A stretch of 60,451 bases of DNA, counting the filler, from Platydemus manokwari (lineage: Eukaryota): NCBI GenBank assembly GCA_037951405.1. It is 5 parts of 5 records of this genome, joined end to end, with 100 filler letters (N's around TTAATTAATTAA, not from the genome) between each part and the next. Parts side by side here need not be neighbours in the genome. Positions count along the whole stretch, not along the records: positions 14,571 to 29,603 come from JBBMOY011359204.1; 4 more parts are not named here. The stretch is one strand, 5' to 3'. Shown piece by piece: positions 14,571 to 29,703 of the stretch. How positions within the stretch are numbered: position 1 is the first letter of the stretch; every line of letters begins with the position of its first letter. Position numbers and translations under genes: made by a program. A model generated the notes under the pieces. The model was not told the origin of the DNA and ran no database searches. It saw only the letters and a program-made list of their open reading frames with translations.

Positions 14571-15940
14571 AATATTTCTTTCGCAAATTTTGTCGTATAT
14601 CTTTTCTCAAATTTATTTTTATATTTAAAAATTCTTACTCTATCTAAAATTTTAAATTTTGATTTAGCATTTAAATTATTATTAAAATCATTCCATTCTA
14701 CAATTTTTTCTTTAATTGTTTCAGGGTTTTTACTTACCTCAGTAGAAGAAATTTCAATACTAGAATGTATTTTATTATAATATCTATTTACAACACTAAT
14801 GGATAATAATTTATAACTTCCGGCAGCTGTAAAATGTTTCCACATAATATTTTTCATAGTTCTAATAAATCTTTCTGCAAAAAACAGCTTTACCTTCATT
14901 TTCAGTATGATATAATATAATTTGATTTTCATTACAACTAAATCAGTACTATGAGTATTGCCTTTAGAAAATATTTAAGCTTTTAAAAAATTCTTAGATT
15001 TTTTATATTCATGATATAATTCTTGAGCTAGTAAATCTTCATCACATAACTTTGTAAATTTAAATTCTTCATCGCTATCATCAGAATTTCCTTATATTTT
15101 CTTAATTGCTAAATCTTTTGCTAAACTTTGTAAACGTGAAAAGCTCTGTCCAAGCATAATTTTCCCTTTCATAATACTTTTAATTAAAATATTTTCTAAT
15201 TTTTCTCTGAATGTTGGATTTGGAACATTATTCATTTGATGTAACATTCAAACATCAGCAAGATTTCTATCTTGTAAATCTTTTGAAATATAACTAACAT
15301 CATGTGACACTGCAGTTTCATCTATTCTATTCTATTCTAGGTTGATATTCTTCTTTGGGAATTGGTGGAATAATTGAGTTTCCTGATGAATCATTTATTT
15401 TTCCAGTTTCATTAAAATTATCAGTAATTTCTTCAAAATTTTGTAATTGTTCTTGAAGATTTGTTCCTGAACCTGTAGGTACATAATTTTCTTTATTAAA
15501 TGGATTCATACCTTTTAAATGAAATTTTCCAGGATGACAACCAGTACTACATTTATATAAAAACTTATTGTTTGTAATTGCTTCTAGTATATCAACACCA
15601 GTCCTATTTAACTAAATTATTAAAATAAATTATCAATATTTTTTAGTATTACAAAAAGATCAGTACATACTTCATAAGTGGCTTTATTAAAAATAGACCG
15701 AGATATATACTATCAGGATTCAAAGATCATGATATTAGTTTTACAAAAAATAATTCAAAATTTTTTCAGTTAATTCGTAATAATAAAATTAAATCATTAA
15801 GAGGAAAATTAAATAACACAAATTATCCTATGAATAAATTGCAATTTGATATAACAGATAATAATCAAATAGAATCTTATTTAGCTTATGTTAATTTATG
15901 TAGGGACTTTGGGAATAAACCACAATCAAACATATTAGAT
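14571..15940 (-). mobile_element. Polinton/Maverick fragment (retroviral-like integrase and neighbouring ORF pieces)
   Basis: ORF 14519-14932 reads AERFIRTMKNIMWKHFT..YYNKIHSSI..KFKILDRVRIFKYKNKFEKRYT.KF..EI, the typical Polinton integrase C-terminus. Upstream LAQELYHEYKK resembles its N-terminus. Truncated by a gap. Confidence 0.8.
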
Positions 15941-16339
15941 TTTCAAAAATTGTACTCTATATTTTGTTTTGAGTTATGAATTTCGGGTAAAGAAAGTTGT
16001 GAAGGAGATATTCGACAAGAAAACACTCTTGAAGAAATTTCAAGACTATTTATTCTGCAAGGTCTAAATAGTAAGAAACCAATAAAGTCTTTAACTCTCG
16101 ACCATTCAATATCTGACGATAGAAGAAGAAAGTTGGCAGTCAATTTGGAGAAGCTAAGTCTGACGAAGCCGATAAACGTCATCAAGTAGACATATGCTCA
16201 GTCGGTATATTAAAGCAATCCTAGAAAAACCTTGAAGAAGGAGACTTTTTACAAGAAGCCAAGCCAAATCGTGCAGTAAACAGATTTTGATGTAAAGAAA
16301 AATCATCGGACACCAGTTAATCACATGGAATCTGATAAG

Positions 16340-16580
16340 AATGATATTTTATTGAATAAATGCATTAAAGAAATTTTTCTGGCTTCTCGGTTCGATTTTG
16401 GATTAACTGATTTTGTGAAACACGAGATCTGAACAAAAGGGGAACCTATTACACAGAACCTCAGAAGGCAACCAACAAATTTATAAACCAAAATTCAAGA
16501 GTTGATAGAAAATATCCTATAATGTAATTTCATAATGCCAAGCAAAAAACATTGGAACTCTCCTTTGGTCATGGTTCTTT
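16340..16580 (+). mobile_element. Ty3/Gypsy pol fragment (start of RT)
   Basis: DFGLTDFVKHEI*TKGEPITQNLRRQP..IQELIENIL*CNFIMPSKKHWNSPLVMV matches the Gypsy pre-RT pattern (H.I.T...PI.Q..RR.P ... PS.S.W.SP.V.V). Probable gag-related sequence from ~15950. Confidence 0.8.
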
Positions 16581-16619
16581 CATGGAAAAGTATCTTTCAA
16601 AAATAAGAATAAAGGAATT

Positions 16620-18240
16620 CAAAAAGGAATTCAATAGTCTTTGTGTGAATTTTTGTTGTATATGGTAAGTCTATAAGCCCAATTTTTCCTTTCGTGAAGA
16701 ATATTTTTAAATATTCTGTAACTTTGTAGCGGCAGACTGACTTTTGTCTCCTTGTTCTGGCTCCCCAAGATGATGAATTGAGCTGGTTGCTTCAATATGT
16801 CGATAAACGAATAGATAAACTGATCCATCAATGTTGGCAATTGTGGCAACGTAATTTATATCTCTGAACTGTTTAAAGTTGAAGTTGACAATGATGTAGT
16901 CTCTATTTTCTTGCAGAATGTTAATAGTTGAGGCTACATTCATGATACAAATATCTGGGCATTCTTTGAAGTACAAGCTGAGAATATTGATAATTTCTTC
17001 AGTTTGCTTTTCAGTACTGTTTTTGATTGAAGTAGTTCCTCCACCAATCTGTTTATCCGATATTTTGCAATCATCATCATCATTCAACAAGTCAATTATT
17101 TCTCCATAAACTGGATTATTGTGTGAATGTTCATGTGCCAGTTTGCGAAGTTCGATTATTGGATAATCCTCATCGTTGAGACTTTGACCATTGGCGATTT
17201 AAGTGGCATTGAAGAAAATCAATGGTCCACAATCATATCCATTGTTTTGACGACGTACATCTGACAAAGGACTTTCAATAAATTTGTGATTAGTTACAAG
17301 TAATTTGTTCAGCCTTTGATGGACTTTGGTGCATATCTCAATCGATGTTTTCGGATCGTAAATTGTTTTGATAGAATCAATCCAATAGTCTTTGTTGGAA
17401 ACATTGTCGTAAACTAGCAGGATCCAGTGTCTATTTGCAATGTTGATCAGTGGAAAAACTATTTGTGAGGCTGAACGAATTTTTAAAAATTCAAATGCAG
17501 ACGTTTGCCGTTTACGATATTTGAGATGAATAATGGATTGATTAAGCTGAATTTTGGTTGTGGTATATATATCTGCAGGATTTCATGATATCTGTGTCTG
17601 AAAACAATAAATTTGGGTTGAAACGATAATTTGTTTTTTTCCGGACGGATGTGCTATCTGCACCAAAGAGAGCGATATTGGTGCAGCCAGCTGGTACAGG
17701 CACACTCCGTCATTGATTTGTGTTGGTTTTGTCTTTATTTTTCGAAGCTCCAGAACTGGTTGTAATTTTGTTTTTTTCCTCTATATGTGTCGATTCCTGA
17801 ATTTTGTCAGCTGAATTGATGAGTTCGACTGTCGTATCATCTTTCAATTTACCAGCTGCTTCAATTAGTGTCGGTTAACTCAGGACATTTTATATAGTGT
17901 CTGTCTCATTTTCTTTTTGGAAATTAATTGTTAGTGGTGGTTTATTCGACAAGATGTAGAATGATTTGTTTTGTAGAAGATTGCTTGCAGATTGCCTTAA
18001 CGCGCTTTTAACAATATCTAAATATTCTTTCATATTTTGATATTTAACATTTGCTGTCACTGCGTAATGTGATTAGTTTATCTAACTTATCCTCGGGTTC
18101 TTTGCATTTCGATAGTTGTTTCATGATGAAGTCATTGTATCAATGGTTGATTGACTTCTCACTCCGATGGAAAGTAGTTAATTAATAACTTCTTTAAATG
18201 AGGTGTTTTTTCGTCTATTCTGAATGCGTCCGATACTTTG
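16620..18240 (-). mobile_element. Transposon fragment encoding a Ulp1 (C48) cysteine protease; NeSL-like non-LTR element suspected
   Basis: Intronless frame 17520-16707: VFPLINIANRHWILLVYD..YWIDSI..RRQNNGYDCGPLIF, showing the His-Asp-Gln-Cys catalytic motifs. One internal TAA at ~17200, then continues into ORF 16707-17090. Confidence 0.65.
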
Positions 18241-18625
18241 ATATTAAATGAAGTAGAGCTTCAAAATCTTCTAATATTTGATTATTTGCAAATAGGATCA
18301 AAGTAGATCGAATTACAACTTATTAAACAAATATTTTAACATTAGAATCAAATTGAGACATACTTAAATTTTTTACAATTATTTTATAAAAATAAGCAAT
18401 GATATTATTAAACGTGCCTATAGTTAACTAGCTCAATTTATAATTAAAAATTAAAATTTAAATACTCAAATAATCATATAGAATTGTAGTGATTAAAATA
18501 TGAACTTAAAACTATATTTAGTCACTATTAGACATCTTAAAAAGTGAGATATTACTGAATTATAAGAATAAGTCAAATTCATTATTACGAAAGTAGAACT
18601 AAGGACTCTTTTCCTTAACTTAAGC
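18240..18625 (+). mobile_element. Truncated copy of the ~600-bp MITE family (see 41913-42512)
   Basis: Collinear with 42061-42512 (ACTCAAATAATCATATAGAA, GTCACTATTA.ACAT, TTAACTTAAGC end). Confidence 0.85.
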
Positions 18626-20304
18626 TCAATGTTCGAAGCATGAAGTTTAAAATTTTAAATTAACTAATCATAATCAGTGTCATTGATTTTCAGTTTATTT
18701 TTCACTTAATACAAACAGCAAACAACAATTGGTAACAACAAATTAGATTTATCGAAGATTTACCTTACTTTGTCTTGTGATAAATTTTCCATGTAGGTTG
18801 TGAAAAATGAATGTAAATTTTGTTGTTGACAATATCTAACAAAATATTCTAGGTTCCAAAATAGACATGAATGTGAAGATGAAATGAACAGAAAATTCTA
18901 TGTAGATTACATGGAAATAATGATAACTAATACAGCACCACACCATTTCTTTCAATAAAATTTTGTGGAAATTCATTTACTCTTATTATTACTATTATCA
19001 TTGTTTGGAAAGTATTTTGATTCGAAATGACATTGAAATATGTTGTTAATGTTTCCTGTTTTGTTTTGAATAATTCATACTCTAGAGAATTTTGATAATC
19101 TTTGAAATATCCTGTTAATGTGACACATTGATTACTCTCAAGATTTAGCAGTGACTTAGGTTTACCGCTTTTGTATGTTTAAACAATGCTTTTCCTGAAT
19201 ATCCTTAAGAGAAAATCAATGCTGTTTAGGGATATTTTTTATTTTGTTTAGATTTTATAATTATGAATAATAATAATAATAATATTAATAATAATAATAA
19301 ACATTAAAAAAAATAAGAAAAATGATAATATTAATAATAAAATGAAGCATGCACACTTGGGTTCCAAATAACGTTAGGCCGTATCGTTAAGTAGTGTTGA
19401 AGCCTTATAAATTCAGTTGACAAGACATAATAAATAGCAATATTAAGGTCATTTCATTATAAAATCAAGACTAGTAGAACTATTTTAATAGTACTCAGGT
19501 ATTGGATCAACAAACGTAATAATCACATGATGTTTGATAAGGTCATTTGTGGAATAAAATTATTATTATGTCAGAAACTTCTATTAAAAATATTTTTCTG
19601 GAATTATTTTCCATCATTAAATGAAAAATACGTATTAAATAAATCCGTGCTGTTTATCGAAGAGATTATGCAATGTTACAATTAATTGAGAATCAAATAC
19701 ATTTTGAATTTCTCATTAATAACAGTAACTCATTTAGATTATTTTGAACTTGAACACGGAATATTAAACAACATTGGCACACCTAGATTATTAAAACCAT
19801 TGTGGATTTGTTCAAAGGTTGAAAATTAAAATGAAAACCTTTTACCAAACTTAATTTTCACTTCCTAAATATTTTCAATTTTGATTATTGATCAAAAAAA
19901 TTTCCAGATTTACCAATCCTTAAAAATTATTTACAAAATAATTTAATTTGAAAATACTACCAAATGAGAATGACAAACTGTACATTTTCTGTTGTCACGT
20001 AACCACCTATGCACACACACCCAATTCATATCCACATAATACACGTGCACACATACACATATATCGAAATACACACCAATTGTTGTACAGTGATATTGTC
20101 GAATTGATAAAAGAGACATTGATATTTTATGAGCAAATAATGACCCATAAAATTGTTAATTTCATTAAGATTTTCTAATTGTGTGCGAGCCTCATCAATC
20201 TGAAAGTGCTGACAAATCGACAATAAAATTTTAATGCAATTAATATGGCTGACAAATTCCAATAAATTCAACTGATTCAAAATCATAAACTCCATTTTCA
20301 TCTA

Positions 20305-22791
20305 ATGCACGAATTTGATTCATTGAATAAATTTACAAATTACCTCCGAGAAAATGATGCTTTACGATTCAAGTCCGAAATTAAAAATTTACCAAATGAT
20401 ATTGTTAATCTTATCGATCATTTGAATGAAAAAGAAAAAGAACGCGCAATTCGGTGGTGTCGAGATGAAAACGTATTTTTGATTCATAAACTATTCATGG
20501 CAGTAAGAACAATCGATTCCATCATTTTCATTAAACATAATTTATCTTATTACAAACAAAATCATTTGTTGGATGATGAAAATCGAACATGGCTCCACAT
20601 TGCAGTATCAGCCAATAGAAATGAAGCGATTTTAAATTTTCTTATAATCGATATTGCTATAGATGTCGAAAAACGTGATTTATATAACTATACCGCATTG
20701 CATATTGCTTGCCAGAAGTTAGAATACAATGAAGGTGAGTTGACTGTTTTAATTCAAAAATCTAATCAACTCATTGTATCATCACTCGATGATGTAACAG
20801 CATTGGAACTAGCGTGCTGTGACATTAGAAAGTTAAATGAAATACAACGAAACAAACGTGTTAAATTAAAGGAATTACTGGAAGCGATCGATAACATTTG
20901 CAATGATCTGCCACAAACTGACGATTTTTATTACAATGATCAGATGTCAAATGAGAAAATCTGGACAAATCTGCTCCACAAAAATGACAAATATAGACTG
21001 ATAAGTGCAATGAGAAAAGATGCCAATTTCAAAGATAGATTTTATCTCTCGACTCAAGAAATCACAAATATCTTATCAATGTGCCATGAAAACGGTCAAG
21101 GAATATTGACTTACATAAAGAAAAAATTTATAAATAACAACAATAAAATAATTTCATTGGAAAACGTCTTTTTCAGAATATCCACCTTATCGATGGAGCA
21201 TCACATCAACCAACAAGTCACCAATGAGTTTTATAAATCAGCACTCTTTGTCTCTTTAATAACAGGTCGTTTTGAATTGGTTCCTCCTTTGCTGAAATTT
21301 TGCCAATTCGAAATTATTCCTTATGCCATGATTATTTGTTTGATTTGTCAGAGACTCAACAATGAAATCTTGTCTTTCCAGGTATTGGATAACATTATTA
21401 AATTGAAAGATTTTTGTGAACTCTATGCCATAGAAGTTTTGAATAGAACATCTATTCGAGATTCTACAATAAAGAAAAAATCGATTTTCAACTTCTTAAA
21501 TGGTTTGAAATATTCTAATCGAACTATTTTGGATATTGCTTATATGGCCAAATGTTCAAGATTTCTCAGTTTACCATCCTGCCAAGAAGTTTTAAATTGT
21601 ATATGGCGTAAAAAAAACAGAAAGTGCCCTTTGATGAAATTTTGGATCCATACGTTTACACATATAATATTCTTAGGTCTGTTAGCACATATATTGATTT
21701 CTGTATTTTACATAAAAATATCAATAGAAGAAGGCGTCTGCTATGTTTATGGTTTTGGATATTTCATAGAAGAATGTCGTCAGATTTTCATTTTAAAAAG
21801 AAACGGTTTGATGTATTACTATATAAATAATGCGACAAATATTCTTGATATTGGAGCCTTGATTTGCATCAGTATTGGTTTTGTACTGAGATTTATTTAT
21901 TTTTCACCATTCTCATCTGGATTCCATGATCAAAACTTGTATAACGAAAGTAATGATGAGTCTCTTTTTGTCATTAAATTGTTGTTGTGCATCTCTTTCA
22001 TACTTTTTTCAATGAGAATTATTTATTTCAGTTCTATTTTTCAAACGTTGGGTCCGAAATTAACTATGATTAGTAAGATGATCATTCACGATTTACTGCC
22101 TTTGATTTTCATTTTTATTATATTTATATTTTCCTTTGGTATTGTTTTCCAGTCGTTACTCTATCCAAATAGTTTGTATAATTATCAAAATATCACCCAA
22201 TATTATAAGAAAACATTGATCTTTGTTTTGGGGGACATTTTAAGAAGAGCAACCTTTACAATTTTCGATCCACACTACATAATTAGAGAATTGGAGGATA
22301 ATTTTGACAAATCAAAGATAAATTACAATGGAAAAATAGCTGTATATTTTCTCACTTTAATTTATGTTGTTGCAGTCAGTGTTATGCTGATGAATCTATT
22401 AATAGCACTCTTCAGTTACACAGTGACGATTATTATTCAAACGTCACAAGAATCGTGGAATGCAAAGAGATACAACGATATAAAAGAATATTTAGATAGA
22501 TCAACTTGTCCTCCTCCATTGAATATCATTGAAATTATAATAGAAATCGGTATGTCATATAAAAGAAGTAGAACAAGACAGAAATCTGAAAAATCGAATC
22601 CGATTATACAATTATACAATTTTCAAAATAAAAATATTCCCAAAATTGAGTTTGATTCATTTGAAATTTTACAGGCTTTTGCTCTTCGAGAGTGCCGTCA
22701 TAAATTAATTCAAACCCCAGAAGATAAAGAATATGAGAGGCTAATGGACTTAAGATTATTGCATAGAAAATTGAATGGTAAATTTAATTGA
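20305..22791 (+). CDS. Ankyrin-repeat-containing TRPM-like cation channel (828 aa, uninterrupted ORF)
   Basis: Ankyrin motifs (NRTWLHIAVS, NYTALHIACQ, DVTALELACC). TRPM MHR4/pre-S1-like segment TILDIAYMAKCSRFLSLPSCQEVLNCIW. S1 PLMKFWIHT, S4-S5 LGPKLTMISKMIIHDL, QSLLYPN, S6 LMNLLIALFSYTV and TRP helix SWNAKRYNDIKEY..PPPL. A possible extra micro-exon follows a GT at ~22777. Confidence 0.9.
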   Translation: MHEFDSLNKFTNYLRENDALRFKSEIKNLPNDIVNLIDHLNEKEKERAIRWCRDENVFLIHKLFMAVRTIDSIIFIKHNLSYYKQNHLLDDENRTWLHIAVSANRNEAILNFLIIDIAIDVEKRDLYNYTALHIACQKLEYNEGELTVLIQKSNQLIVSSLDDVTALELACCDIRKLNEIQRNKRVKLKELLEAIDNICNDLPQTDDFYYNDQMSNEKIWTNLLHKNDKYRLISAMRKDANFKDRFYLSTQEITNILSMCHENGQGILTYIKKKFINNNNKIISLENVFFRISTLSMEHHINQQVTNEFYKSALFVSLITGRFELVPPLLKFCQFEIIPYAMIICLICQRLNNEILSFQVLDNIIKLKDFCELYAIEVLNRTSIRDSTIKKKSIFNFLNGLKYSNRTILDIAYMAKCSRFLSLPSCQEVLNCIWRKKNRKCPLMKFWIHTFTHIIFLGLLAHILISVFYIKISIEEGVCYVYGFGYFIEECRQIFILKRNGLMYYYINNATNILDIGALICISIGFVLRFIYFSPFSSGFHDQNLYNESNDESLFVIKLLLCISFILFSMRIIYFSSIFQTLGPKLTMISKMIIHDLLPLIFIFIIFIFSFGIVFQSLLYPNSLYNYQNITQYYKKTLIFVLGDILRRATFTIFDPHYIIRELEDNFDKSKINYNGKIAVYFLTLIYVVAVSVMLMNLLIALFSYTVTIIIQTSQESWNAKRYNDIKEYLDRSTCPPPLNIIEIIIEIGMSYKRSRTRQKSEKSNPIIQLYNFQNKNIPKIEFDSFEILQAFALRECRHKLIQTPEDKEYERLMDLRLLHRKLNGKFN

Positions 22792-23749
22792 ATTATTTCA
22801 TGAACTGCGAAAAGGAAATATCGATGGTAATCTGATTTATTTCAGTAAATCTAGAAATCTAACCCCGATCATTGTTAAGGTAACTTGTATTGTCTTTTAT
22901 TAATTTTTAATCAATAACAATCGATCTGTTTAATATTTGATGTAATAATTTTGTACTAAACTGTTCTAAACTTAGAAAATGATTATTCTTACGACAGTCT
23001 TATGTAGAATTTTATTTGATATTTAGATTCTATAAGATATAAAATGTTTTCTACTGAGATCAATCAGATGAATTTATAGATATTGAAACTTAAAACTCAT
23101 TTGAAAACCCATGCTTTCACTCCAAAAATAAAAAAAACATCTGTGATATCTGTCATAACATTTGAAAAAGTCTAAAAACCTGGATATATTTTCAAATGAT
23201 TTGGAAGGATTCACGAATATTGTACGTTTTTCAATTTTCCTTGACGACATTGAGCTGCTATATGTTTGTTAGTCACATTGAGAAACCTCTGTAAGTATTT
23301 ATGGTGAATGTTGTTTAATTATTTTTTAATATCAAACATTCACATTGTCTTTACCACACAACAACTAATTTAATCCATAGAGTCCATACACAATTTCGTG
23401 GGTATTTTTCTGTCTCAACAAAATACCCTAACAAATCTTAAGATTAACACGATTGATCAGGAATATTTGATTATTTATAGGATTTTAATAGGAATTCTAA
23501 TCACTAGATTAACGAAATTATTATGTTATATAAACCAACTTTACGTTGTTTATTTCGCGCGTATTTTACTTTTCAACTCATTCCTTCGTGTGGCAATAAA
23601 ATATATAAAGTACTTGCCCGTTGTTATTCATTTATTTTTAATGACGATTAATAATTCAGGTTTTGAAACGTTAGTTTTATTTTTTTAATTAAATTTTTAG
23701 AGATATATAAAATGTTGAAGTGGCTTATATTTATCATTATGTTCTTTGC

Positions 23750-24350
23750 AAGAGTTATATCCAAATCATAAAGTAAGTTTTTAGTGCGCCGCTCAAATCA
23801 TGATAAAAGACAAAAAAGATAAATAAACTTAATTTACTGGAAATTTCTGCTCAATTTTATCTATGAATTGGGAGATTGTAATGAAGACAGATAATTCTTC
23901 AGATTATCAGAAAATATTTCGCATGTGTCATAAGAAATCGTTAAATATTTCATGACAAATTTTGATCAAAATTTTCGAAACTAAAATTTTCATGTTTCTT
24001 GTCAAATGATCAATGATAATGAAAATTTTATAAGAAACTCAAAAATATCATTTTTCGAATCTCCAAATTTGCTTTACTAAGTACGTTATGAAATAACAAC
24101 TATTGATCAAAATTTCAAGTTCTTCTTGTCACATGATAGAACCAGATTACATGAATTTTGGTCAATGAATATAAAGTACCTTTTTCAATTTCAAGCAATT
24201 TGCCTAGACTCTTTCAAAAGAAATTTCAATAATTTCGAGGCTAAGAATCCACTTATAAAACCAAGTTTACATTACAAAAAATAATTGCTCTAGTAACATA
24301 ACTCTCGTATGTGTTGAAAGATTTCCTAGTAAAAGTAAGATATTAATTTT
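23750..24350 (+). mobile_element. Possible hAT transposase C-terminal relic
   Basis: Broken fragments LHEFWSMN and VCVERFPS resemble the hAT dimerisation region (FW ... ER.FS). Weak. Confidence 0.3.
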
Positions 24351-24419
24351 TCATGTATCGTTCGAAAAGATTGAATATATATTGAATATGTGAGGTTCAA
24401 TTAAAATAATTAAAAATAA

Positions 24420-24530
24420 CAACTTTTAAAACATTTAAAAATTTAATATTTTTATATAAAATGTTTTAAAAGAATTTTAAAAGTTTTAAAATGTTTTAAA
24501 AATTTTAAAAGTAAAATTTTTAAAATAAAT
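24420..24530. repeat. Tandem palindromic TTTTAAAA minisatellite
   Basis: Repeated ttttaaaa units read directly. Confidence 0.7.
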
Positions 24531-25833
24531 ATTTATATATATAACCCTGATTAAGATAAATATTAAATGATAAAGCTTTCAAAAATTTGCTTGAATAATG
24601 TTTATTTGTTTTATTAAATAAATTTGAGAAAATCCTAGTCAAGAGTTCTTTTGATGAAACACCAGTAACAAGTGAAGTAGCGGCCACTAACAATATGATT
24701 TATATGAAAATCAGCATAAGTTATATTTGAAGATTTGTTTCATATGTGATTCAAGCAAAATATGGGACTGTTAGAATCGGACTAAAGAACATAAAAATGG
24801 GTAAAATATACAGACTTTATTGTGAAATCGCTTACCAATGAAAGACATCAACAAATATAAACTGAATCAAACATACTTCTGGATTTTACAAAGAAATAAT
24901 GAATTTTATTAATTTTGGTTTAAATTTGATGCCTGAATTTATTATTAGAACAACGAATTTAAATTTCACCTAGTAAACATTAGGAAATTTACCCTTAATA
25001 AAATTACATATGATTTTGCTAAACTCTAATTAAAGTAACATATTTTAAGGATTAATGATTGATGTGCACAGTAGTTAGAGTGGTGTTAATTTTAGTAAAA
25101 ATTGAATAAAGTTTGTGAAGTATAAATTGTTTTAATGACGAAAAACGTAATCGGAAACGCTATATGATCAATTTGTTGTCAACCGAATCAAATCAACATT
25201 TAGTTTTAACATAATTTATGAGTGTCAGTCATAAAATTATCTAAGCAGGTACACTAGATAAAAAATGTTATAAGTTCAGTTAAAGTAAATGAGAACTGAA
25301 AATAAAATAAGAAGTGGCAGACCAACATAAGTAATATTTTAAGAAATCGTTTAGATAATAAACCTATAAAATTTAATATTCTGCAAGTAATAAATTTTTT
25401 TACTCAGATTTTACTAATAAAAACATAATTTTTAAATAAGCAGATAATATAGATGTATAATTTCGAATGTTTCGAATTTATAAATCATTTACAATAAATG
25501 AAATTAACTTCGATTTGATAATGCTCCAAAACTTGAAAATTTCTATAATAATAATAATTTTATTTTTACGAATGGACAACAGACATCCACTATAAGTAGT
25601 CATCGTAAACAGATCAGAAACATTTCAAATTAGTATTTTTATCTGATTATTTGATGGCAAAGGGATACTAATGACTCGATCAATCGGCTTGTATATACAT
25701 ACAATCATGACACATTGCAATTATTCAATACACAACTGCATCTGATAATAATGATGTAGAATGCAGATGAGGCCAAGATAATCGTTATAAAATCTTTAAT
25801 AAAAAATCTAAATATATATCTCAAAAAATTTAC

Positions 25834-28800
25834 CAAAGAATCTGTAGAATTATCGGCCATTTTGTTAAACAATTCACCACAGATCACTGGAACAATTCCT
25901 CTAAAGTTAAAATTTAATAAAAACATAAATCATAATAAATTTAATAAAACTTAATATTTGTTTAACACATTTGTTTAAAACATTCAATGAAACTTAACGT
26001 GAAAAATTGAGATTTATTGTGTAACCGGGAATTTTATCCGACATTCTAATATCCTGAATTGGATTGTTTGTGTGCATTTTTCATTTTTAGTTTCTAGCTA
26101 CAAGTGCCAAATAATCATGAAATCTTTTTCTAAATCACAATTTCAATATGTTCTAAAGTATTTTTCCATTATTTATTATTTAATTATTATAAAGATTAAT
26201 TTTAAGTCTTTCTTTTAAGCGGTTAAATTAATTTAAAAAATCAAAATATAATCAAAGATGTAAAATTATCTAATTGTTAACATAGAGTATCTTACTTGTT
26301 ACTACCATAGCCAACCATTGAATATGACTTGCCAGAACCCGTTTGACCATATGCAAACAATGAACAATTATATCCATTAAATGCATTTTCTAAAACATTT
26401 AATCCAAGGCTTTCAAATACTATTTTCTGACTAGCATATTTTGAATTAGGATTATCGGGGAGAAGTATCCCATTATCATCTTCCTTGAAGCCATCGTGAG
26501 ACCTTGAATTAAGTACACTCTTTATGAATAAATATAATGGATTTCACCAATAAATAAATTTCACTAATGATTATTCAATGACTCAAATATTTTGTTATAT
26601 AAATGGTGTTTTATGCGAAATATTTCACGATGAAATCTGCATTAATTCATTCAATATTATTTACAAAGGTATGCATCGTAATGCAATAAATCCTACTTAT
26701 TTTAAAAATTTAAATTCTTTGTATTATTGATTGTTTGATTATTGTGGTACATATTCAATTTCAATTATGCCACTACATCAGACGATTAAAGAGCCTTTAT
26801 TGGATAATTTTTATTAAATTCTAAAACGATCATAATATGGTCTGACTTTTTGAAGATTTTTACGACATGTCAATCGATCACAAGTTAATTTATTCTTTAA
26901 TTGACATATTCGAAAAAAACTGGAAATATTGATGAAAAATCACATGGCAAACCTCGGACTAATAATTAAAAATGTAAAGTTGGTGCTGTTGATAATTTTG
27001 TGAATGAAATGGGTGATAATTTCAAACAAAAGGGATCTAAGAATCTAATACCTAAATTTTATTCTCTCCATGAGCTTAATGAGAATCAGTCTGATCAACA
27101 ACAAAGTGCCTATGAAGATTTCGACGCTTAATGACAAGATCCTCAACTAATAGAGAAAAAATAGACAAAGCCAAGTTATATCTGATTGGATCAGCTAATC
27201 ATTATAACTGTATATTTTGATTTGATAAAAACCAAAATCATTATTATATAAAATCTAATGTGTGACTGTTTAGACTGACATTTTAGCACAAAGAGTTATT
27301 GCGCCAAATTTCTTCAGGACAATTTCATGCTTCAAAACATTCTTCCAAATGCTATAGGGCCTACCTACCAAATTTTTCTAAGCCATTTGGTTAGTTAAGA
27401 GGATCTCCTTTTGGATCAGATCTCCAGATGACTTAACTCCATGTTATTTTTTTTAATATCATGTAAAAGAAGTAGTGTTATCCTCTATACTTGGATAAAT
27501 TCGAAAATATAATTTGCAACGCTAATAAATGATTCTATAGAAAAGTATACTTTCGACTTATTGAGAATCGAATTTGTCATTGTATTAATGAAAGTGGTAG
27601 AAAATTTGAAAATAAAATTTAAAAGTCTTTATAAAACGAGGCTTGAGAAAATGTACCGTCGGACACCTTGTATATTTTAAGTTTTTTCGAGATCATAACA
27701 CGATCTCAACCTAACATACTGTAAAAATAAACAAGTAACCTTTTAAATTTAACTTTCAAAATAATAATAAAGAAGATTTCAATTTCATGGCTTCCACATC
27801 TCTTATTTGTATATATATAAGTATATAAATGTGTTTCACATAAAAGAGTGCGTTATATGTAGAGAATATCCTAATACGAGTCAGACTGAAAATTTATTAC
27901 AAATACAAATAGAAAATAGATTAAGAAAATTAGTAAATTAAAAATCCAAGGTCATTCAGATGAGTAGATATAAAAACTAAACACATGCAGCAGTGTAGCA
28001 CTTGTGGTGAATATCAAGGTTTTAATCAGAATATCATCATCTATTGTTAGATTAAAACATTAAAAATTTAATTAATATAATACATAGAATATAATGGTAA
28101 CATCATAACTATATTTAATAAATTTTATTGTAATTCCACCAAATAACAATTTATAATCATGATATTTTGTGGAGTCACTTGTCGGTGCATTCAATAGTAT
28201 CCAAAAAGTCAAAGGAACAATATAATATTTATTTCAGTAATCAATAGTGTTCCCAAAAATATAATCCCCGAATTTTGGGAGTTAAATATCAATTTGTACA
28301 TTAAATATTTCTTATACACAAGTGGTTATTTTCAATACTTTTCAAAAAGAATTATGGAAGTTAAATATTAATGGATTTATCAATGTTTTAAAATAATTTA
28401 CGTTGGTTGTTAAAAGGAAATTTAATTAAACAAAAATTCCAAGTATAATTTGCATAAAAATTAATGAGTTATTGATATTTCATATCCTATAGTATCATTG
28501 ATAAAAAGTAAAATGAATTTTGTTCTTTGTGTTTTGTTTTTCATTTGATCATGTTTTTATCAGTATGTGAGAGAGAAATGCAAAAGTCTTCAAACATAAT
28601 TTGTAAGTGATAGTAAAATGGAGGTTGAAATTAGCGCGGACCTAATAATATAATTCAAGTTTCTTTGCTTCAAGGTCGTTGGAACTGATCAATCGATACA
28701 AAAGTAAGACCTTATAACCTTTAAATAAATCTTGATTATTGATTATACTATCACACGAAATTAGTTACCACTAATTCTGAACTCTTTTCATTGAAAGACT

Positions 28801-29305
28801 TAAAGAAACTTTTGAGTATAACATAATTTTTAAATCTATCTTGATAATATCCCAGTTGATACTCTTAAATAACATATCATGAAATACAAAAAATTAAATC
28901 GAAATCGACTGGAATATTTTTGCAAATTGATTTAATATAATAAAAAAATATTGGTTGTAAATATTTTTTGTAATAGAGAAAATTTATTTTATAAAATTGC
29001 CTGCATAGTCGAATTATCAATTAATAAATGAATTACCAAAATGAATAATCGAATGTGAACATCTTCTTATCACTGGGATCTAAATTATTTCAAAGCTTAT
29101 AATATTATGATTTTTTATAAATATCTCTACTTTCAGGATTTGTTATTATTGTAGTATTTTCTTGCATTTCGATCGTTAATTTGGCCATCCTATCCTTTTC
29201 TCTTTGATTGAAAGGTCTTACTCTAACTGCAACTTTTACTCTAAAGAATATTCCAGTAAACATTTTGTTTACAAAAAAACATTATGCTTACGATTCATCA
29301 GCCAT
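25834..29305 (-). CDS. Kinesin-3 family motor, KIF28-like; first five coding exons
   Basis: Exons 29305-29292 (MADES), 29240-29131 ([17 protein letters not shown]), 29079-29037 (MFTFDYSFW), 26502-26296 ([33 protein letters not shown]-loop) and 25900-25834 ([11 protein letters not shown]). All GT-AG with consistent phases. Later exons were not found. Confidence 0.92.
26850..27675 (+). mobile_element. Degenerate Tc1/mariner transposon in the kinesin intron
   Basis: [20 protein letters not shown] (~27412-27480) resembles WPPRSPDLTPCDFFLWG. FLQD motif at ~27310. Terminal GGACACCTTGTATA is typical of a TIR end. Confidence 0.65.
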
Positions 29306-29703
29306 CGTAAATAATTATTCTAAATATTACGATATCTTAAAATTTTAACATGAAGTTTAAAATTGTGATTTGAGATTTGAATTGTATATAGTAAAACAAA
29401 TGAAATTTAACTAAAAAGAATTAACTTCTTTTAGTTAAAAAATATTTTTATATGCGTGTGTTGTAAATATAATAATTTAAATAAAAATTTTGTCTTCCTA
29501 ATTTTTGTTCATTAATATTAATAAAATAACAAGTGCAGATAAGTTAATACGTTAATTTTTTGTCTATTGGCTTGAATTTTAGAAATCTAAATAATAGAAA
29601 ATTNNNNNNNNNNNNNNNNNNNNNNNNNNNNNNNNNNNNNNNNNNNNTTAATTAATTAANNNNNNNNNNNNNNNNNNNNNNNNNNNNNNNNNNNNNNNNN
29701 NNN

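Follow-up and report, generated by a model that had tools for sequence, protein, structure and literature searches.

A short ankyrin-bearing TRPM-like channel gene of Platydemus manokwari and its probable place in the flatworm TRPM_MCLZ family

The DNA analysed here (the window) is 60,451 nucleotides (nt) long and consists of five parts of five records of the Platydemus manokwari genome (NCBI GenBank assembly GCA_037951405.1), joined end to end with 100 filler letters between each part and the next. The part at positions 14571-29603 (JBBMOY011359204.1) carries on its plus strand an open reading frame (ORF) at 20305..22791, called the query below, in which ankyrin repeats are followed by a TRP-type channel. 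The question raised by this locus is whether the two modules were joined here, by retroposition or domain shuffling as an earlier sequence-only reading suggested, or whether they form part of an older family. We consider it likely that the query belongs to the flatworm 'TRPM-like' TRPM_MCLZ family as a short-form paralogue, and that the gene encodes a working channel or did so until recently. Its domain content, fold, clade membership and conserved residues are direct results of the analysis described here.

Domain layout and nearest channel family

The ORF runs for 828 codons from ATG to TGA on a single unbroken frame, as had been claimed. An in-frame TAA lies at 20263, 42 nt 5' of the ATG, and the first residues of the protein match those of two relatives (P0001 and P0002, see below) in a collinear alignment; on this basis the start is probably complete, and the frame looks complete at both ends. 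The GC content of the piece is 23-35%. The 828 sense codons stay open in DNA of about 30% GC, where the next longest ORFs encode at most 137 residues (one that reaches the N stretch at the edge of the piece) and then 127 residues, the latter being the limit for other complete ORFs. A search of the piece for a second copy of the gene found none. The layout is as follows (all on the plus strand; MHR, melastatin homology region).

20305..22791, plus strand: apparently complete single-exon ORF, 828 codons and TGA
20332..20874, plus strand: ankyrin stack, residues ~10-190, about five helix-turn-helix repeats (Pfam, model, structure search)
20527-20718, plus strand: Pfam Ank_2 match above cut-off, residues 75-138
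20914..21606, plus strand: helical linker resembling MHR3/MHR4 of TRPM (linker helical domain), residues 204-434, ending at the invariant W434
21607..21627, plus strand: seven-residue link, residues 435-441, replacing the 87-190-residue pre-S1 segment of relatives (alignment)
21628..22038, plus strand: S1-S4 voltage-sensor-like domain, residues 442-578 (model, alignment)
within 21628..22038, plus strand: helices S1 (442-465), S2 (474-499), S3 (510-532) and S4 (552-578) (model)
22051..22413, plus strand: S4-S5 linker, S5, pore helix (638-654), filter ..TIFD655 and S6 (674-703), residues 583-703
22420..22521, plus strand: TRP helix, residues 706-731 (W718-N-A-K-R722-Y723, Y729), then R732-S733-T-C-PPPL
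22522..22788, plus strand: short C-terminal helices, residues 740-828, stopping where the long coiled-coil tail of relatives starts (alignment, model)

The Ank_2 match reaches 33.2 bits (cut-off 27.3), rising to 36.4 bits when the N-terminal half is searched alone. A model of the query generated by AlphaFold2 from a 60-sequence alignment has a mean predicted local distance difference test score (pLDDT) of 88.1 and a predicted template modelling score (pTM) of 0.84, with the ankyrin helices at a pLDDT of about 90. This model was compared with about 48,000 representative PDB chains using VIA-align, independently of Foldseek. Over residues ~10-186 it matches ankyrin-repeat proteins and DARPins with Z 13-14 and a root-mean-square deviation (rmsd) of 2-3 Å over 120-175 aligned residues, so that the N-terminus both scores and folds as ankyrin. 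The sequence-only reading had counted about three motifs at ~20570-20830. That range does lie inside the stack, which extends further in both directions and holds about five repeats.

Residues 204-828 can be superposed on TRPM5, TRPM2, TRPM7 and TRPM4, beginning with MHR3 and continuing through the C-terminal helices (Z 20-21, rmsd ~4 Å, 525-564 residues), corresponding to TRPM5 346-1080, TRPM4 405-1160 and TRPM2 465-1160. Within this region the linker (model residues 204-435) aligns to MHR3/4 of TRPM2, 4, 5 and 7, and residues 336-438 have a weak sequence match to TRPM3 640-744. In the model, the canonical ankyrin stack precedes the MHR3/4-like part and occupies the place of MHR1/2. All 50 of the matches listed by Foldseek are TRPM, as are the best 60 sequence matches in the PDB (E 3e-20 to 6e-15). 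The motifs on which a TRPM-like rather than TRPC- or TRPA-like channel had been proposed are all found (PLMKFW, LGPKLTMISKM, QSLLYPN, LLIALFSYT, WNAKRY and CPPPL).

Pfam finds no SLOG/LSDAT, NUDT9H or kinase domain in the whole protein or in its N-terminal half, and a local SLOG hidden Markov model, which recognises the full-length canonical TRPMs tested, does not match the query; the absence of these domains had been correctly noted. The protein ends 106 residues past the TRP-box Arg722, with a single 23-residue terminal helix (805-827) in the model and no Pfam TRPM_tetra match. In sequence and fold the canonical TRPMs (2, 3, 4, 5, 7 and 8) are the closest matches to the query over the stretch that begins with the MHR3/4 linker and ends with the C-terminal helices, and they share with it the S2/S3 Ca2+-site residues and the motifs LGPK, NLLIA.FS, W....R and PPP. 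The query differs from them in having no SLOG/MHR1-2, NUDT9H or kinase domain and no Pfam TRPM_tetra match, in its canonical ankyrin stack, in the divergence of its filter and TRP box, and in an identity of only 22-28%. The statement that TRPMs lack ankyrin repeats holds at the level of sequence; in terms of fold it does not, since MHR3 of TRPM folds as ankyrin-like repeats and is at times named the ankyrin repeat domain, ARD (PMC8145809).

The order of ankyrin repeats, linker helical domain, transmembrane domain and TRP helix is also that of TRPC and TRPN (NOMPC), and the channel might belong to one of the ankyrin-bearing TRP families (TRPC, TRPN or TRPA) and merely mimic TRPM motifs. TRPC chains (Z 16-18) and NOMPC (Z 16.6) do align over ankyrin, linker and transmembrane domain in the structure search, although below TRPM; NOMPC is a good match for the channel part of P0003; and among the results of a search with language-model features are clusters of painless, TRPC, TRPN and TRPV at 0.95-0.96. 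We read these clusters as mirroring domain layout rather than kinship, because the alignment-based searches rank TRPM first. The query has no Pfam match to the TRP_2 domain, it retains TRPM-specific motifs and Ca2+-site residues, and the best 150 of the 3800 matches of the profile search described below include none that is laid out like TRPC or TRPN. A published tree of flatworm TRP channels places the group beside TRPM (PMC12861061). We therefore give membership of another TRP family almost no credence; the sequence, profile, Foldseek and structure-alignment ranks all put the channel core nearest to TRPM, as first proposed.

The residues of the channel were aligned to TRPM consensus columns. 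The Ca2+-site residues of S2 and S3 are kept (E490, Q493, N512 and D515), which by residue identity makes this a predicted Ca2+ site. Also retained are residues that are invariant or nearly so in the family and in TRPM, namely W434, P442, G583, P584, M592, N697, W718, R722 and PPP. The TRP box keeps its W718 and R722, with a divergent middle (WNAKR in the query, WLADR in the family, WKFQR in TRPM), and Asp655 stands in the column of the TRPM filter Gly, confirming the divergence of TRP box and pore loop that had been pointed out.

All six predicted contacts of (S)-meclonazepam ((S)-MCLZ) are kept, as H449, H453, Y486, E490, R571 and Y729 of the query; their counterparts in Schistosoma mansoni are H827, H831, Y864, E868, R943 and Y1117, in a mapping made from the alignment and the published Echinococcus numbering, without the S. 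mansoni sequence. The S4 position that governs sensitivity is His in sensitive schistosomes (S. mansoni His946) and Tyr in insensitive or low-sensitivity species (PMC10788528). In the query it is Tyr574, which by analogy would predict a low sensitivity to meclonazepam.

Relatives and origin of the layout

A channel of this general organisation has been described, in papers of 2023-2026. Smp_333650, named TRPM_MCLZ, is the channel of S. mansoni that the anthelmintic meclonazepam activates; its gene has three exons and encodes N-terminal 'ankyrin-like' repeats, and its cloned cDNA spans the ankyrin and channel parts, which establishes such a transcript for the family (Park et al., PMC10788528). 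It has no MHR1/2-SLOG region, the place of which is taken by ankyrin-type modules (Sprague et al., PMC11731825, section 3.1). A further paper names the group 'TRPM-like' and has it cluster next to the TRPMs; it also analyses 63 orthologues from trematodes, monogeneans and cestodes (PMC12861061).

Word-index searches returned two relatives of ~820 residues, P0001 (54% identity) and P0010 (42%), longer proteins with ankyrin repeats and a channel from Sparganum, Echinococcus, Mesocestoides, Taenia and Hymenolepis, and two contigs. Over the region searched, canonical SLOG-bearing TRPMs have an identity of only 24-27% with P0002. An exhaustive search was then made using a profile of the region from linker to C-terminus of nine family members, giving 3800 matches. 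The best ~35 have no SLOG domain, and those that possess an N-terminus bear ankyrin repeats; below them, almost every full-length match is a TRPM with a SLOG domain. The top group includes named proteins from Opisthorchis, Dicrocoelium, Fasciolopsis, Echinostoma, Protopolystoma and Macrostomum lignano, with several paralogues in the last. The named members of the clade without SLOG thus represent cestodes, trematodes, a monogenean and Macrostomum, all of them flatworms. This agrees with the lineage-specific architecture put forward by the sequence-only reading; its novelty does not stand, given the three publications cited above (PMC10788528, PMC11731825, PMC12861061).

Several of the gene models need care. 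P0008 (Hymenolepis), P0009 (a European Nucleotide Archive contig), P0020 (a Fasciolopsis buski cluster), P0024 (Echinostoma) and P0025 (Protopolystoma) are truncated at the N-terminus and hence seem to have no ankyrin repeats, and the Opisthorchis models P0018 and P0164 (1906-2059 residues) appear over-extended. In Macrostomum lignano (NIVC01001595.1), the two-exon gene of P0026 lies wholly within the range of a gene for a leucine-rich repeat/EF-hand protein on the opposite strand.

An unrooted tree was calculated with IQ-TREE (LG+C20+F+G4) from 58 rows and 533 columns, with TRPMs and their SLOG-free relatives as its scope and no TRPC, TRPN or TRPS. A branch with support of 100/100 parts 21 proteins without SLOG from 37 SLOG-bearing TRPMs. 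On the former side, a Macrostomum group (100/99) stands opposite a group of 14 rows (100/99), which holds the query together with P0001 and P0010 (100/100), P0002, P0021/P0022, and trematode and cestode proteins. A quick tree of 104 rows gives the same picture. P0005, from Echinococcus granulosus, has Phe at the S4 position 952, as in the published Eg.TRPM_MCLZ[F952H] (PMC12861061), and the clade of the query is therefore the TRPM_MCLZ clade. A Schistosoma rodhaini protein, P0035, was considered as a TRPM_MCLZ and rejected, its residues at the published positions being a misfit and its grouping being with the SLOG-bearing TRPMs.

These results bear directly on the origin of the gene. The proposal that it is a recent chimera, in which retroposition or exon shuffling acting here joined an unrelated ankyrin module to a TRPM channel, has in its favour the single exon and the position of the ankyrin repeats in the place of SLOG. 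It is contradicted by the same layout in cestodes, trematodes and Macrostomum. The ankyrin part of the query is homologous to and collinear with that of its long relatives (E 2e-35), and the fusion is therefore old, not local. Since ankyrin-bearing members are also found in Macrostomum, it predates the divergence between Macrostomum and the other flatworms.

Nor does the single exon require retroposition. The TRPM_MCLZ gene of Echinococcus has three exons, the last of which encodes 775 residues, that of S. mansoni likewise has three, and one Macrostomum member has two. In a family so poor in introns, having one exon is only a minor change. A poly(A) remnant was looked for 3' of the stop codon and none was evident; target-site duplications would be hard to see in the AT-rich flanks. 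Profile matches restricted to the N-terminal part (P0051, P0053, P0055, P0068, P0146, P0151 and P0158) were considered as a possible donor family and rejected, being fragments, split genes or chimeric gene models. We regard a recent chimera at this locus as very improbable, and neither the domain shuffling nor the retroposition of the sequence-only reading is borne out.

One of these models deserves a separate remark. P0158 (Paragonimus westermani KAA3680707.1) is annotated as a Cu+-exporting ATPase. It opens with ankyrin repeats and a TRPM_MCLZ-type linker (profile positions 19-143, E 8e-42), followed by HMA and P-type ATPase domains, and is probably a mis-merged model of two adjacent genes.

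A different origin can be suggested for the family as a whole. The ankyrin-bearing flatworm clade could be the surviving sister of all SLOG-bearing TRPMs and TRPS, and not a TRPM in which ankyrin repeats replaced SLOG. The unrooted trees separate the clade from every sampled SLOG-TRPM at 100/100 and do not place the root. If this arrangement were true, the clade would have kept ankyrin domain, linker and transmembrane domain in their ancestral order and would effectively be a separate TRP family. Ankyrin repeats have been stated to be lost before the split of TRPM and TRPS (PMC7306681); that statement would then be revised, with both the loss of ankyrin and the gain of SLOG dating from after the split of the clade. 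We think this origin unlikely.

The short forms and the state of this copy

Within the TRPM_MCLZ clade, the query resembles the known channel in its N-terminal ankyrin repeats in the place of MHR1/2-SLOG, in its TRPM-like linker, S1-S6 and TRP helix, in grouping in the same 100/99 clade as the Echinococcus TRPM_MCLZ, in the six predicted drug contacts, and in having few or no introns. The query has ~830 residues and about five ankyrin repeats, compared with about 1100-1400 residues and a longer array; it has no C-terminal coiled-coil tail; and at the S4 sensitivity position its Tyr replaces the His946 of S. mansoni. It belongs to a separate short-form lineage, apparently beside a long-form gene, and is not a one-to-one orthologue of TRPM_MCLZ with the full-length layout.

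A mark of this lineage is the spacing between the invariant W434 and P442. It is seven residues in the query, P0001 and P0010, and 87-190 residues in the 18 other aligned family members; the equivalent spacing in ten canonical TRPMs is 47-145 residues. The cut pre-S1 link described by the sequence-only reading is thus real, and judged from the alignment these three proteins have lost the whole pre-S1 segment. They also lack several ankyrin repeats, and end where the C-terminal tail of the long forms starts. P0030 represents a fourth short form, with an identity of 48-50% to both the query and P0001 and of 47% to P0010. The short subfamily (query, P0001, P0010 and P0030) has lost about half of the ankyrin repeats, the pre-S1 segment and the C-terminal tail; its four members are 42-54% identical to each other and have the same shortened layout throughout. 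P0023 is a long-form fragment, 80% identical to P0002. The UniParc numbers of P0030 and P0023 are in the same series as those of P0001 and P0010, which suggests one lineage with a long-form gene and several old short paralogues.

The functional state of the query itself is less certain, and a number of observations weigh against a working gene of this family. Neighbouring UniParc numbers are the sole basis for assigning P0001, P0010, P0023 and P0030 to one species. The Pfam profile Ion_trans gives no score on the query, yet it does on the long relatives. Of the profiles that the sequence-only reading had named as a check, Ank_2 alone is therefore above its cut-off, with LSDAT as well as Ion_trans giving no match. 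Because the long relatives do score, we take the Ion_trans miss as a problem of sensitivity with the AT-biased sequence of the query. Gating could suffer from the lack of a pre-S1 segment, since this segment is present in every other aligned relative. RNA runs holding the query stretch were looked for and none was found.

The remaining points come from the only other read set with the DNA of the query, called X1, which behaves as a fragmented genomic assembly. Its contigs are identical to the window over much of the gene, and other parts are covered by variant contigs only, with some stretches replaced. The sole contig over codon 333 (window 21303) has TGA in place of TGC; codons 695-700 of S6 (22389-22404) are a net 9 nt shorter; and there are several deletion-like joints, among them 20520>21020, which skips 499 nt, and 22592>22664, which skips 71 nt. 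The substitutions between the window and X1 comprise 5 synonymous and 14 non-synonymous changes, with a ratio of non-synonymous to synonymous differences per site (pN/pS) of about 0.7. These variants may represent alleles carried by a different individual, or pseudogene copies that have diverged at other places in the X1 genome.

On this evidence the query might be a dispensable or decaying copy, that is, a recently inactivated or polymorphic pseudogene in a short-form subfamily that has expanded, the ORF being intact in the present assembly only. The stop codon, the 9-nt loss, the joints and the replaced stretches of X1, the ratio of 5 synonymous to 14 non-synonymous changes, the absence of a matching RNA run and the deletion of an otherwise universal segment would all fit. 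The copy in the window, by comparison, has all 828 of its codons unbroken in AT-rich DNA, and retains the invariant and near-invariant residues listed above. The layout shared by four short forms as far apart as 42-54% identity indicates long-term maintenance, and the contigs of X1 are short and may stem from other copies or individuals. We consider decay unlikely, though it is the alternative that we take most seriously.

We thus return to a short-form paralogue of TRPM_MCLZ that is, or recently was, a working channel. In this protein the ankyrin stack takes the position of MHR1/2-SLOG and is followed by the MHR3/4-like linker, the six transmembrane helices, the TRP helix and the short C-terminal helices. 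It is predicted to form tetramers that conduct cations non-selectively. Their gating would proceed through the cavity between S1-S4 and the TRP helix, which is the ligand site for meclonazepam in TRPM_MCLZ, with intracellular Ca2+ as a co-factor that may bind at the conserved E-Q-N-D site of S2 and S3.

Neighbouring DNA and significance for the family

No tRNA and no Rfam family were found in the piece at 14571-29603, and the ORFs neighbouring the query match no Pfam family. An ORF at 14573-14932 on the minus strand, which reaches the N edge, includes the stretch ..FAERFIRTMKNIMWKHF.., which may resemble the C-terminal part of retroelement integrases, although the ORF has no Pfam match. Between 16000 and 18100 the GC content is 0.34-0.35, compared with 0.23-0.29 around it, and the minus strand has ORFs of 72-127 residues that may be exons of a neighbouring gene; the longest has no Pfam family. 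An (ATA)n microsatellite of ~27 copies is found at 19257-19340, and a CA-rich low-complexity tract at 20000-20065, 240-300 nt 5' of the ATG of the query.

The ankyrin and TRPM-like layout has itself been published, and is already known as that of a validated anthelmintic target. The query is therefore not a new kind of channel, and what it adds is modest: the new part is the short subfamily. This is a natural minimal version, which keeps the ligand cavity and the predicted Ca2+ site, and would be useful for studies of structure and function in channels of the TRPM_MCLZ type. The presence of the family in the free-living Macrostomum, as several paralogues, means that the layout of ankyrin repeats and TRPM-like channel is older than the split between Macrostomum and the parasitic lineages.

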